Assembly: GCF_000143415.4 (NCBI RefSeq)
Contig: NW_003314314.1
Coordinates: forward strand, 439,771-503,770
Length of the DNA stretch: 64,000 nt
Source of the DNA: Selaginella moellendorffii
Lineage: Eukaryota > Plantae > Lycopodiophyta
Direction of reading: 5' to 3'
The position numbers were made by a program, and so were the translations under genes. Of the stretch, positions 29,401 through 35,234 are shown in pieces (position 1 is the first letter of the stretch; every line of letters begins with the position of its first letter). The notes beneath the pieces are model-generated. The model was not told the DNA's origin. It worked only from the letters and a program-made list of their open reading frames with translations, and made no database searches.

Positions 29401-31983
29401 CATAACAGGTTAAAAGATATCATTTTTTTGGACCTTGCTTTGGACTCCACGGTGCGGACTGCAGTAGAAAGAGGCTTGGAAGGATTGAGTAAAGCGAGCC
29501 CCTCTGTAAGCCAGCTCTAAAATGCACTCATTTATTTTCCCTCGCTAAACATCTTTCAAACATTTTCAGGATATGATGCTCATAATTTGTCTTGTTCTGG
29601 AAAACTTGTGTCTGTCAAGCGATAGCAATGAAGAGCTCGTTTACTGTTTAAAGGTAGAGGCTTTACTTTATGAAAAAATGTCCTCTAACAGCTTCCCTTT
29701 GCAGGATTGGTACAATATCATCAAGCTTTGCAACTCTAAAGCCGAAAACTGGGCGTTACAAGCGAAATCAGTTCTTGATCGCACTCGTCTTGTTCTTGGT
29801 GATAAAGTAGAGCATTATCAAAAGGTTTTGCAGCCGACAGCTGAGTATCTTGGTATTTCATTTGGCGTCGAACAATGGGCCGTATGTACTTACTTTTATG
29901 CTAACTCCTGATCAAAATGTTGGAATGTTGTTTCTGTGTCAGATGGAAATTTTTACAGAGGAGATGATACGAGCGGGCTCAGCCGCGTCTCTCTCTGTTC
30001 TTCTCAATCGATTAGATCCGGTTTTGCGTAGTACAGCGCATTTAGGAAGGTGTGTTTTTGTTTCTTTCTATGCATGTTTGTCTTACAATTTTTTTTCCAT
30101 ACAGTTGGCAAGTTATTAGTCCAGTAAATGTTCAAGGTTTTGTCTCGGTAGTACATGAGCTCGGTGACGTGCAAGATAAAGTTTATGATAAGCCGACAAT
30201 ACTGATATCCGGAAGAGTCAAAGGGGAGGAAGAGATTCCTGATGGCGCAGTTGCAGTTTTAACTCCTGATATGCCTGACGTGCTCTCTCATGTATCTGTG
30301 CGTGCACGAAACAGCAAGGTAAATGCCAGAGTTTCAGGATGCTTCAAAAGTCACTCTGATTTTTCGCTTATGATAGGTCTTATTCGCGACATGTTTCGAT
30401 CCTAACATTTTAACGGACCTGCGTTCGTTGGAAGGCAAAGCTTTAAAGCTGCAGCTCACTGCGTCTTCTGAGATCGTGTACAGGTAGTACGAATGACAAG
30501 GCTCTTTTTCTTACGTTGGTTTTGCCATAGTAAGGTGAGCGACACGGAGTTGTCAGGCGACGTTGCTGCAGCAGTGGAGGAGGAACCCCCGCACATTGTG
30601 TTGAAAACCAAGAGATTCATGGGAAAGTACGCGGTCACGGCCGATGAATTCACGCCTGAGCTGGTAAAGTAGGATCCATTTCTGTGTTCGTTGTTGACAG
30701 CATTTAGAAACAGGTCGGCGCTAAATCTTTGAACACTGCAAACCTGCGAGGGAAACTTCCTTCGTGGATAAAACTTCCAACTTATGTTGCGTTGCCATTT
30801 GGAGTTTTCGAGGAAGTGCTTTCAAACAGTATCAACAAGGTACTGGTCCGCTCTAATATTTTTCAGGTTGACGCTTTCTTTTGCCTCGTTGCAGGAGGTT
30901 TCCGCAGAAGTTGAGCGGCTTAAAAAGCCGCTGCTCGGCGGTGATTTGAGCAAACTCAAAGAAATTCGCGACACTATTTTGAAGCTCAAGGCTCCACCGG
31001 AACTGGTAAAGTCGGCTGCCACGACACTTATACTAAAGTTCTTGACTCTTTTGTTTCGAACAGGTTGAGGAGCTGAAAACTACAATGATCAATTTCAACA
31101 TGCCATGGCCGGGTAACGAAGGCGAGCATAGATGGGAGCAGGCGTGGATGGCCATCAGACGAGTATGTCCCCTCTCTCCTTTTGTTCTTTTCCTCTCGTG
31201 CTGAAGCGTTGGTCAAACAGGTGTGGGCGTCGAAATGGAACGAAAGGGCCTTTATCAGCACTCGCAAGGCAAAGATAGATCACGAACATCTTCGCATGGC
31301 AGTGTTAGTTCAGCAGATTATCTGCGCGGACTATGCCTTTGTCATCCACACTACGAATCCTTCGAATGGGAATGCCTCGGAAATCTACGCAGAGGTAAGG
31401 AAACCAAGCTTGTTTTTCATGTTTTTTAGAAAAAAAACTTGTTTCCAGGTCGTCAAGGGATTGGGAGAGACATTGGTTGGCGCATACCAAGGCCGTGCGT
31501 TGAGTTTTGTCACGCAGAAATCAGACTTGAAAAACCCAAAGGTAACTGAAGTTTCTCGTCTTTTCTCTTGGTAAAGCTTGCATTGCATTCTCTGTTGGAG
31601 CAGATCTTAGGATTTCCCAGCAAGCGACATGGCTTGTTCATCAAGCCTTCGGTGATTTTTCGCTCCGATTCCAATGGAGAGGATCTGGAAGGCTATGCCG
31701 GAGCTGGTTTATACGACAGGTAACTTCGCATTTCCTTTTCCATTGAAGAGCAAAGCTAAAGCCATGATCAAACAACAGCGTTCCAATGGATCGAGAAGAA
31801 GAGCGAGTGGTGGACTACTCCACGGACAAGTTACTCCTGGATGCGAGTTTCCAGAAGACGATTCTATCCAACATCGCTAGCGCCGGAGCCGAGATCGAGA
31901 GAGTCTATGGAACTCCTCAAGATATAGAAGGGTGTATCAAAGATGGAGAGCTCTACGTTGTCCAAACGAGACCTCAAATGTAA
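26059..31983 (+). CDS. GWD1: Alpha-glucan water dikinase, about 30 exons
   Basis: QLTWNKNYNVKPREIS, GQRIRDEILVIQRNNDCKGGMMEEWHQKLHNNTSPDD, phospho-His LSHVSVRARN, RSDSNGEDLEGYAGAGLYDS, VVQTRPQM*; start tentative. Confidence 0.95.
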
Positions 31984-32143
31984 GAGTAGAAATTGAAAGT
32001 TAAGAGTTTACTACGGCGTGGTAAAACGTGAGACCGCCAAGTAACTAAAAGGACGGTACGGTATCGTGAAAGCCAGGCGCGTGAGAGAGAAGAGAGCTAG
32101 GCTAGAATTTGCGGGAGAGAGCGAGAGCGCGGGAGGGACAGCG

Positions 32144-33074
32144 ATGGCGCAAGCAATGGAGCTGCCGGCGATGCCAGCGGAGGCGAAGCTCTTCGGCAAG
32201 TGGAGCTATGGCGATCTTGCGGAGGTTTTGTGGAATTTCTTGCTTCTTGCTGCCGCCGGTCGATCGATCGATCGATCGATCGATCTGATGATCTGCATTG
32301 TTTCTTGCTCGATCGCAGATCGAAGACATGAGCCTCGAGGACTACATCGCCGTGAATGGCCACAAAGTGGGAAGCTTTGTCCCTTGCACCGCCGGGCGCT
32401 ACTCGAGGAAGCGATTCAAGAAGGGGCGGTGCCCGATCGTGGAGAGGTGCGTGCTCGAAATCTCCCTCGGTCTTGGCAAGATTTCTCTCGATCGATCAAG
32501 TCAAGCGATGTTCTTGATCTCTCTGTGTCTGATCGCCAGGCTCGTCAACGCGCTCATGTTCCACGGCCGCAACAGCGGAAAGAAGGTCATGGCGGTGAGG
32601 ATCGTCAAGTACGCGATGGAGATTATCCATCTCCTCACGGATGAGAACCCGATCAAAGTGGTCCTGGACGCCATCCAGCACTGGTATGGCACGCGCATTT
32701 CTTGGATAGGAATTCTTTTTGGTGTGCCTGATCGATCTTTCCAGCGCTCCTCGCGAGGAGTCGGTGAGCCTGGTGACGAGAGGCGTCGCCAGGCGCAGCT
32801 CCGTGGACACGTCGCCGCTGAGGAGGGTGAATCAAGCCCTGGCCTTCATCGCCACCGGCACGAGGGAGAGCGCATTCAAGACCGCCAAGCCCATCGCCGA
32901 GTGTCTGGCGGACGAGCTCATCAACGCCGCCAAAGGATCGTCCAACAGGTGAAAGAGATGAGAGATTCAAAGCCTCCTCCTTTTCTTCTTGTTCGACTGA
33001 GGGCGATCTTTGCTTGCAGCTATGCGGTGAGGAGGAAGGATGAGATCGAGCGCGTCGCCAAAACCATGCGATGA
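32144..33074 (+). CDS. RPS5: Divergent 40S ribosomal protein uS7 (RPS5) paralog, 5 exons
   Basis: Exons 32144-32224, 32319-32446, 32540-32683, 32745-32948, 33020-33074 join in frame; [59 protein letters not shown]. Confidence 0.93.
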
Positions 33075-35234
33075 GTGGAAGCTCGATTCAAGGTCTTTGA
33101 TTTCGTTTCGTTTCGTTTCGCTGGTTTGGCTTTGTTCGCTTGACTTATATTACCAAGAGGGGTGAAATGATATTCTGGATAGCCTATGTTCTATTTTCCC
33201 GTTAAAACTCATTCTGATTTGCAACGTGGCGAAAGGATGTGCCAAAAAGATTTCTAAGTATGAAAATTGTGTTCTTTGGGTGCTTTTGGCGCGATCGCGC
33301 CTTCAAAGAGATAAAAGTAAGGGCCTCCCAAGGTGGTGCTTGAGCAAAGCCCTGGCTGTGTTCTTGGATAAAATGTGGAAGTGTGAGGATGGTTACATGG
33401 TTTTCAGCGCCGTGGAAGCTTTGGCTGGCGGATGGGAAGTGGCCGCGGTAGGGAAATTGGAAGCGGTGCGGCAGTGGCGGTGGTGGCGGGGTGGCAAAAA
33501 AGATCTCCATCCCTGAGCGACCAGGAGATGATCCGGCTGCATGGCGAGGTGATCCGGGCGGAGGGCGTGCTGAGATTCTAGTGGACCGGGAGCAGGCGGT
33601 GTCGCCAGAGCCACTGAGGATGAAAATGCGTGAGGGATCATCAAGATCTCACGGAGACTTAGAATTCTTTTACTGTCTCGCCACATCATCAAGTCCTTTT
33701 TGCCACGCGGGCTTCCACGTTGCAAGTCCTTATACATGTTTTCTAAAGCTTAACGAGTCTTTATACATGTTTTCGAAAGCTTGGAAATCTGTCTAGATTG
33801 CAACATAATTATGGTTTGAAATCTGGTTTGATCAAGGTAAAACTTAATCACTGAAATTCACTGAAAATTAGGCATCCAAATATCTCTTGGAAATTTATTT
33901 GCTTTTGCATATGCCTTCAAGACAAAAAACATATTTTATTATATTTTAAATAGTTACTAATAAATAAGAATCAAATTCATACCATTTGCTTTAATACCAC
34001 ACTCTATTTCTCCCTTTAAACGATCTAAAAAAATCAGGCAATTAATACCTATTTGATCCTTATATATCCTAAGATTCCCAAGATTTCAAAGATTCATATC
34101 TAAATTTTATGGTATATGGAAAGCATCAATGGCAAGAAAGTGGAGAGTCTTGTTGTTCCTAACTGCCACTCAATAAAAAGAATTCGTCAATATTTGCTAG
34201 GATTTCAAAAGTTTTTTTAATCAATATTTATCTTCTAAAAAATGCATTAAATTCTCAATTTCTCTATTTTTTTGATGCACATGCCAAAAGTGAAACAAAT
34301 CATCATAAATGCTAACAATATTTTCTAACTCACAGATCATATTATATCATACATAATATTTTAACAGTTGACTAAATTTTATGTCATATATACTACACTT
34401 ATTTAGTTTTTGACTAAATTAAGTAGAATATAATAGATTTAAAAGAATTCAAAGTTATTATCTGTGATTATAATATAAATAGTTATAAACAAAGTATAAA
34501 TCATGAAAGGAAAGTTTTTTAGCAATGCTTTGCTCTAGTGTTTAGGATTGTGCTTTTTTGTTCTTATTTCTTCATTCTTTTTTAGATTTAGATCTATATT
34601 AATGTTTTGCAAAATCTAGAATTTTAGCTATCATTGTGCTTAGATTTGCTCTTTCTTTTGATTTTCATTGCATGCTTTTCTTCTATCATGCCACGCCGTC
34701 ATCAATCAAGGAATATGTCACTTGAGGTTACTATTGTTACTTTATTGGATCAAACTTTTTGTGTTATGGGATGTGATTATGTTGGTGTTGTGCCTATTCT
34801 TGATATGTTGCTGTCTCCAACTTCCATGGGACATGATTACATAGTTTGTCTTGTTCTCGGTGTTCTACCATTTTCTATTGATGTAGAGTGTGATCGTGAC
34901 ATTGATTAGTAAATTATAGATGATGTAGTTTAATTGTTGAAGAATGTTTAAGGATTAAATTTATAGGAAGACAATGTATACAAGCTTGAGTGGATTCTAG
35001 AGTGTGATGATGAGCTTGATTATTATGGAGATAGCTTTGGAGTTGAAGTGGAAATTTCACGGGATAGGTGTCAATTTTTCAATCTGCCATCTGATCATTT
35101 TTCTTTCCCTTCTGCTCTTTCCTAACCTTTTCTTATTTCTCGGTCTGAGCCACCTTCTTATATTCTTAATATTTTTTTTATCATTTGCAGTGTTTTCTTT
35201 TTCTAGCACATCAATTATTTGTGATTTTCATTTT

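Follow-up and report, generated by a model that had tools for sequence, protein, structure and literature searches.

In a 64,000-nucleotide stretch of the Selaginella moellendorffii genome (assembly GCF_000143415.4, contig NW_003314314.1, positions 439,771 to 503,770 of the forward strand; hereafter the window), a strongly divergent paralog of the gene for the cytosolic ribosomal protein uS7 (RPS5) occupies positions 32144 to 33074, downstream of a glucan-water-dikinase (GWD) gene. By its exon structure and sequence, the paralog appears to be an old DNA-level duplicate of the cytosolic uS7/RPS5 gene that has retained its introns, and several independent lines suggest that it is still maintained as a protein-coding gene through selection on the coding sequence. 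We see about an even chance that it represents a maintained, fast-evolving ribosomal uS7 of restricted use or low stoichiometry.

The gene model was built by script (Table 1). Its five exons form a coding sequence of 612 nt, that is 203 amino acids plus TGA, interrupted by four introns of 94, 93, 61 and 71 nt that all run from GT to AG, and its translation is letter for letter that of the RefSeq protein XP_002982261.2 ('40S ribosomal protein S5', Selaginella moellendorffii; 1.42-Mb scaffold), here P0002, which was retrieved by a word-index search with the long in-frame open reading frame (ORF) spanning exons 2, 3 and 5 as the query. A first-pass annotation of the window had described five exons with canonical splice sites and an unbroken, full-length ORF; since the independent 203-codon model equals XP_002982261.2, the coordinates, the exon count and the peptide differences quoted there are correct. 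The other haplotype of the assembly encodes XP_002966189.2 (P0179), and an annotation artefact is ruled out by the agreement with RefSeq and by the presence of the gene in both haplotypes. Two older gene models on file have 194 amino acids, a length that fits a start at Met10.

The protein matches the eukaryotic cytosolic type of uS7, with both the N-terminal segment typical of eukaryotes and the Arg at the C-terminus. Two exon-level pieces, each taken alone, reach 48.4 and 49 bits against Pfam PF00177 (Ribosomal_S7; cut-off 24), a family also precomputed for P0002, and 67 distinct uS7 chains from solved 80S ribosomes match the paralog below 1e-20, among them Arabidopsis uS7 (9h3g_AD, E = 3.4e-79), which aligns collinearly over residues 9-202 of the paralog and 14-206 of the chain. 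The gene had been called a paralog, with the proviso that it might prove to be the ordinary RPS5 of the genome; this candidate is ruled out by two canonical copies in the same genome, P0137 (SELMODRAFT_228853) and P0182 (SELMODRAFT_271466), which are one residue apart. The paralog resembles canonical Selaginella and plant uS7 in its five exons and four introns at homologous positions, in the equal size of exons 3 to 5, in a length within one residue, in the Pfam family and in an identical core helix, whereas it departs from them in its identity of about 64% (to the Selaginella copies 63% by search and 64.8% over 199 aligned columns), in 25 against 0 changes at near-invariant sites and in a rebuilt hairpin loop; from the canonical Selaginella gene it further differs in the loss of the telo-box and site II promoter elements, in GC content at third codon positions (GC3; 0.84 against 0.68) and in having only trace RNA. 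All of the quoted peptide differences (the 25-residue hairpin segment, a further 16 residues and the tail AKTMR) are real against both the consensus of 120 uS7 sequences and the canonical copy, and the 21-residue core is indeed unaltered. On these alignments, the core that defines the fold is kept, as are almost all charged positions of the RNA-contact type. A single-sequence AlphaFold model reached a mean predicted local distance difference test score (pLDDT) of 49, too poor for use, and was set aside.

The canonical locus and the locus of the other haplotype were fetched and their exon structures solved exactly. All four introns lie at homologous positions and in the same phases in the paralog and the canonical gene, intron 1 sitting in phase 0 at the aligned E/I position of both; therefore, the paralog arose by duplication at the DNA level, and a retrocopy is ruled out. 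Between the two genes the nonsynonymous divergence (dN) is 0.27, and the synonymous divergence (dS), at 1.6 by NG86 with a still larger maximum-likelihood estimate, is saturated. Recent gene conversion with the canonical copy is also ruled out, because no 30-codon window has a low dS (0.8-2.3 in every one). In a uS7 tree under the posterior mean site frequency (PMSF) mixture model the family is near-star and too conserved for the duplication to be placed; a clade with the canonical Selaginella copies, as expected of a Selaginella-specific origin, was not rejected by the approximately unbiased test (p = 0.51).

In the PMSF tree the stem branch of the paralog is 3.65 changes per site long, the median tip being 0.22, and Tajima relative-rate tests with five outgroups count 40-51 paralog-specific against 7-10 canonical-specific changes (p <= 2e-5); the protein has evolved about six times faster than the canonical one. 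At 112 positions that are at least 95% conserved among the 120 uS7 sequences, the paralog deviates 25 times, canonical Selaginella uS7 not at all and a ciliate uS7 11 times; the only sequences with comparable deviation counts, P0030 and P0096, are true artefacts, visibly mis-spliced and deviating in contiguous out-of-frame blocks. GC-biased gene conversion was considered as the driver of the acceleration and ruled out, as weak-to-strong changes (39, against 8 strong-to-weak) are in excess only at third codon positions, there is no such imbalance at the other two, and the introns have only 48% GC. As a separate observation, P0111, from a Logan assembly, is a genuinely divergent uS7 with 12 conserved-site deviations, and it independently has a 14-residue variant of the conserved LTNSLMMHGRNNGKK motif, as in the Selaginella paralog.

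The dN/dS between paralog and canonical copy is about 0.17, an upper bound because synonymous divergence is saturated. Substitutions avoid the conserved sites (25 of 112, against 44 of 89 variable sites; p = 9e-5); 24 of the 25 conserved basic sites are still basic, four of the five changes there being K/R swaps, all 15 conserved acidic sites are kept, 11 of 13 conserved Gly/Pro sites are kept, and the isoelectric point is 9.6 against 9.75 in the canonical protein. Both haplotypes preserve an unbroken ORF, the ATG and all eight splice sites. When neutral change was simulated up to the amino-acid divergence observed (substitutions without indels), only 5% of the runs kept a stop-free ORF, and the ATG and the eight splice dinucleotides all survived with a probability of about 0.02.

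The two haplotypes point the same way. Their exons differ at 4 of 612 positions (0.65%), with two non-synonymous (A12T and A74V) and two synonymous differences, whereas 9 of 319 intron positions (2.8%) differ, as do 6 of 160 in the spacer upstream and 13 of 326 in the 3' flank; against all flanking non-coding sequence (3.5%) the exons are 4-5 times less diverged (p = 2e-4). GWD served as the local control for haplotype divergence and for expression, and its ratio of exon to intron divergence, 0.22 (1.23% against 5.56%), is that of the paralog, 0.23. The paralog sequence also behaves as codons, because its GC3 of 0.84-0.87 is unlike its introns (0.48); the canonical copies have 0.67-0.68 and GWD 0.56. 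So high a GC3 is odd for a nearly silent gene, and GC-biased gene conversion does not account for it, the introns and the other codon positions being unaffected. The marks of a pseudogene are thus missing, with the ORF and the GT..AG borders intact, the four introns retained and dN/dS low, and both the dN/dS and the protection of the exons between haplotypes indicate an intact gene under purifying selection; a dN/dS near one without orthologs, as of a recent pseudogene, had been named as a refutation.

The hairpin loop and the C-terminal tail of uS7 line the mRNA exit channel and the E site in other eukaryotes. The changes of the paralog are concentrated in these two elements. In the beta-hairpin and the residues leading into it (residues 117-137), 9 of 15 conserved sites are changed, compared with 16 of 97 in the rest of the protein (odds ratio 7.6, p = 7e-4), and the near-invariant hairpin pattern GPREDxTRxG...RRQAVD is not matched. 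Within the hairpin PRE, G131, R134, R135, V138 and D139 are kept. Yeast numbering is that of the paralog plus 22, as derived from the ranges in solved chains and from residue strings in the literature (144EDT146, 147TR148, 151GGG..ARRQ158 and 222KSNR225; PMC4513230). On this scale the paralog keeps the equivalents of E144 (E122) and its partner R225 (R203), of the loop residues R156 and R157 (R134 and R135), and of D215 (D193) and R219 (R197) at the eIF2alpha interface, while R148 has become Ser126, with a new Arg four residues on at position 130, Q158 has become Ser136, S223 Thr201 and N224 Met202; Gly128Val and His50Cys are further changes. Among the loop arginines tested in yeast, only the equivalent of R148 is lost.

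Mutants of yeast rps5 from the Hinnebusch laboratory (PMC4513230; PMC5323038) offer the nearest functional comparison. E144R and R225K cause strong initiation defects; in the loop, where most changes are mild, R148A/E, R156A/E and R157A give higher fidelity against UUG (PMC4513230). D215, R219 and S223 modulate, through eIF2alpha, the open and closed states (PMC5323038). The natural changes of the paralog lie in the same elements, at R148, Q158, S223 and N224; however, the yeast alleles are single engineered changes with measured phenotypes, whereas in the paralog 11 of 18 hairpin residues differ at once, as read from the sequence, and the positions of strongest phenotype (E144, R225 and D215) are unaltered. 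Of the claim that normally near-invariant functional surfaces are rewired, the changed hairpin and tail stand, whereas the equivalents of several residues with the strongest initiation phenotypes in yeast (E144, R225, D215 and R219), and of the loop residues R156 and R157, are kept; a rewired hairpin is a fair description, yet the most critical positions are intact, and an effect on initiation may be suggested by analogy.

These changes could be taken as those of a dedicated subunit of specialised ribosomes, made in a particular tissue or stage, in which the rebuilt hairpin and tail change the stringency of start-codon or context selection. The concentration of substitutions in the hairpin, the loss of the very arginine whose replacement in yeast raises fidelity against UUG (PMC4513230) and the substitutions in the tail at the equivalents of S223 and N224, which adjoin the eIF2alpha interface (PMC5323038), would suit such a subunit, as would the loss of the housekeeping promoter motifs. 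We nonetheless consider it unlikely: besides the six kept residues, relaxed constraint on the translational surface would equally yield drift of the hairpin, and no sampled tissue has appreciable expression.

Expression was followed with two sets of contigs and two stranded RNA-seq runs, all mapped to positions 30500-35000 of the window. Read depth over the paralog is 0-2, all on the sense strand and about 2 over exon 4 in run X14, against about 60 over GWD, whose introns are all spliced, and the paralog contigs have a k-mer depth of 3-5 against 207 for GWD in the same run. The joint of intron 1 (32222>32317) is present in X1 and X2 contigs and that of intron 4 in X1 and X2 contigs and one X14 read, and intron 2 is spliced in an X2 contig that at 32447 goes over into the opening bases of exon 3. 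The joint of intron 3 was not seen in these reads and contigs; one low-depth contig keeps intron 3 and carries the four differences of the other haplotype. In an expression atlas (bioRxiv 10.1101/744326, supplementary Table S2; 49 samples, with strobili, shoot apex, stress and whole-plant material outside these), the allelic model Smo85986 has 0-0.5 transcripts per million (TPM) in 39 aerial samples, 0-0.34 TPM in aerial roots and rhizophores, 0 in the two samples labelled 'Roots', 0.84 TPM in one of three samples of the root elongation and differentiation zone and 0 in the other two, and 0.85-1.9 TPM in three samples of the root meristematic zone. Expression is thus near zero in all samples seen, the maximum being the 1.9 TPM of the root meristematic zone, and the tissue- or stage-restricted expression that had been predicted was not found in them.

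Exactly 160 bp separate the GWD stop codon (31981-31983) from the ATG of the paralog, and this spacer must contain the end of the GWD 3' untranslated region (UTR), near 32037, where the X2 contig of GWD stops, together with the promoter and the 5' UTR of the paralog. In both haplotypes it has no AAACCCTA/TAGGGTTT telo-box and no TGGGCY/RGCCCA site II element, just as the first-pass annotation had reported for this gap, whereas the canonical gene has AAACCCTA at -51, TAGGGTTT at -22 and one site II element further upstream. Neither the telo-box and site II elements nor the high, growth-linked expression of housekeeping plant ribosomal protein genes was found for the paralog, and it has left the housekeeping ribosomal protein regulon. 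The canonical RPS5 locus itself (L002:2950-2986), with two inverted telo-boxes at most 51 bp from the ATG, provides a compact lycophyte ribosomal protein promoter module.

So low an expression raises the question of whether the gene is simply being lost. If selection had relaxed on a redundant duplicate now turning into a pseudogene, the gene would be nearly silent, with its trace RNA arising as read-through from GWD, and one X1 contig (31848-32434) does join the last GWD exon, the 160-bp spacer and exons 1 and 2 with intron 1 removed; the 25 changed near-invariant sites, the lack of orthologs found and the two further amino acids at which the haplotypes differ, one of them (A74V) in a conserved motif, would also fit. 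However, the ORF, start codon and eight splice sites have stayed intact in both haplotypes despite a dS of at least 1.6, the exons are protected relative to the introns exactly as in the functional neighbour GWD, the charged sites are conserved, and GC3 behaves as in codons. Decay of this kind therefore seems improbable to us.

Expression orders of magnitude under that of any stoichiometric ribosome component, and loss of the ribosomal protein promoter module, could alternatively mark an extraribosomal derivative, in which the uS7 fold and RNA-binding surface are kept for an RNA-binding regulator or an assembly-related factor and the hairpin is free to drift. The conservation of charge and core, with the translational surface alone altered, would be expected of such a protein. 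We doubt this reading, since the eukaryote-specific N-terminal segment, the C-terminal helix and the equivalents of the E144-R225 pair, a pair known only for its role inside the ribosome, are kept, and the paralog has no new domain, extension or localisation signal.

A further reading is a replacement in the organelle, in which a cytosolic-type uS7 would be imported into mitochondria in place of the bacterial-type rps7 that is no longer in Selaginella mitochondrial DNA. The Selaginella chondrome has lost ribosomal protein genes (PMC3325193), and Silene conica, having lost mitochondrial rps7, is left with the cytosolic RPS5 as its sole homolog, the replacement there being unresolved (bioRxiv 10.1101/2025.11.24.690252). 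However, the paralog has no N-terminal extension relative to the canonical copy and no presequence, its N-terminus contains acidic residues, the eukaryote-specific cytosolic features are kept, and expression is far under the needs of a constitutive mitoribosomal protein, which together make this replacement highly improbable.

Among 5.8 billion proteins, the best non-self matches to the paralog are ordinary uS7 proteins of at most 67% identity, the coverage of other Selaginella species by that database not being established, and a query with the C-terminal half, which admitted fragments of 55-173 amino acids, likewise gave nothing above 67% identity. Given the saturated synonymous divergence, related species should carry orthologs, provided that the gene is old and was retained; they are either absent or merely unsampled, because so silent a gene is seldom assembled from transcriptomes. 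A literature search by gene identifier gave no paper, and the stored supplement of a second atlas paper does not contain the gene.

The closest known parallel is Drosophila RpS5b, a germline-enriched, DNA-mediated uS7 duplicate that has likewise been kept beside the canonical copy, acts at the mRNA exit channel and has been proposed as a specialised-ribosome subunit, as has the Selaginella paralog (PMC6760144; PMC8887423; PMC12704716). RpS5b shares 76% of its residues with RpS5a, and 90% within the modelled core, is highly expressed in the ovary, is found in 80S ribosomes and is conserved in 11 of 12 Drosophila species (PMC8887423; PMC12704716), whereas the Selaginella paralog, here characterised from sequence and RNA, has diverged further, is hardly transcribed in the samples covered and lacks known orthologs. 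Switching of uS7 paralogs in the Drosophila germline (PMC8887423) would favour a specialised subunit; against it, flies in which the coding sequences of RpS5a and RpS5b had been seamlessly exchanged were wild type, the two being interchangeable (PMC12704716). Since RpS5b is interchangeable despite its abundance and conservation, caution is needed in concluding specialisation from sequence. Arabidopsis also has two uS7 genes in one plant, RPS5A and RPS5B, with different expression domains (cited in PMC8887423); however, neither departs from canonical uS7 in hairpin or core (in chains 9h3g_AD and 9sdq_BF the invariant motif is intact), and the difference between them is regulatory.

The features of the locus are collected in Table 1. 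Beyond them, intron 1 of the paralog contains a (GATC)n microsatellite (32260-32285), and its 3' UTR has a TTTCG-type repeat (33109-33165), of which the blocks 33109-33134 and 33146-33165 are missing from the other haplotype (L001). A scan of positions 31500-34000 with Rfam gave no match, hence no intronic snoRNA was found. Further downstream, RNA reads and contigs cover 59 nt at 33513-33571; all of them differ from the window at 33541-33542 and continue on both sides into sequence absent nearby, and the stretch looks like an exon copied from an expressed gene elsewhere.

Table 1. Features of the uS7 paralog and its surroundings, in window positions
Feature	Positions	Strand	Remarks
Exon 1	32144-32224	+	codons 1-27, followed by a phase-0 intron; script-built model
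Exon 2	32319-32446	+	carries CTAGRY (His to Cys, residue 50) and an altered 10-residue segment
Exon 3	32540-32683	+	144 nt, size as in the canonical gene; from a 15-residue segment to DAIQH
Exon 4	32745-32948	+	204 nt, canonical-sized; beta-hairpin (residues ~118-142, the most altered part) and conserved core helix
Exon 5	33020-33074	+	55 nt, canonical-sized; C-terminal helix, tail ...AKTMR, TGA
Spacer	31984-32143	+	160 bp, GA-rich, from GWD stop to paralog ATG
3' UTR	33075-33185 at least	+	X2 contig reaches 33185; indel-polymorphic between haplotypes (haplotype alignment)
GWD, last eight exons	30529-31983	+	upstream gene; Pfam families, joints, depth ~60

Taking these results together, the reading to which we give an even chance, that of a maintained ribosomal uS7 of restricted use or low stoichiometry, would work as follows: the paralog would still bind the head of the 18S rRNA as uS7, would be used in a cell type, stage or condition outside the sampled ones, or at very low stoichiometry, and would give 40S subunits with a changed hairpin loop that has no equivalent of the yeast R148 arginine. 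Several points weigh against it. Expression is extremely low for any ribosomal protein, and the X1 contig that bridges GWD and the paralog means that either the UTRs overlap or some of the paralog RNA is GWD read-through. Constraint is not demonstrable on an independent lineage because no ortholog, whether full-length or fragmentary, was found in any other organism, and the haplotype comparison counts two non-synonymous and only two synonymous differences. Both the existence of the protein and its place in the 40S subunit are predictions from the sequence. Near-absent RNA, the missing orthologs and a recent negative result for the fly paralog, the best-studied one of uS7, weaken the case. As for the first-pass proposal of a specialised uS7 that alters initiation, an intact and apparently selected paralog, the hairpin changes and the loss of the promoter motifs have come through, whereas the enrichment in a tissue has not, and the residues of strongest phenotype are kept.

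uS7 is among the most conserved eukaryotic proteins, with its hairpin at the mRNA exit of the 40S subunit and at the docking place of eIF2alpha. The paralog would in effect be a natural multi-site mutant of the hairpin under selection, and it could reveal how much of the hairpin surface is indispensable and whether a ribosomal protein paralog of divergent sequence serves a plant in anything beyond dosage. It would be a long shot that in strobili, spores, gametophytes or the embryo there are 40S subunits with this uS7 in which the exit-channel hairpin loop is largely replaced and start-site or E-site behaviour differs; if true, however, no natural cytosolic uS7 known in use would be more divergent than the Selaginella paralog, which, unlike RpS5b, would probably not be interchangeable with the canonical protein.

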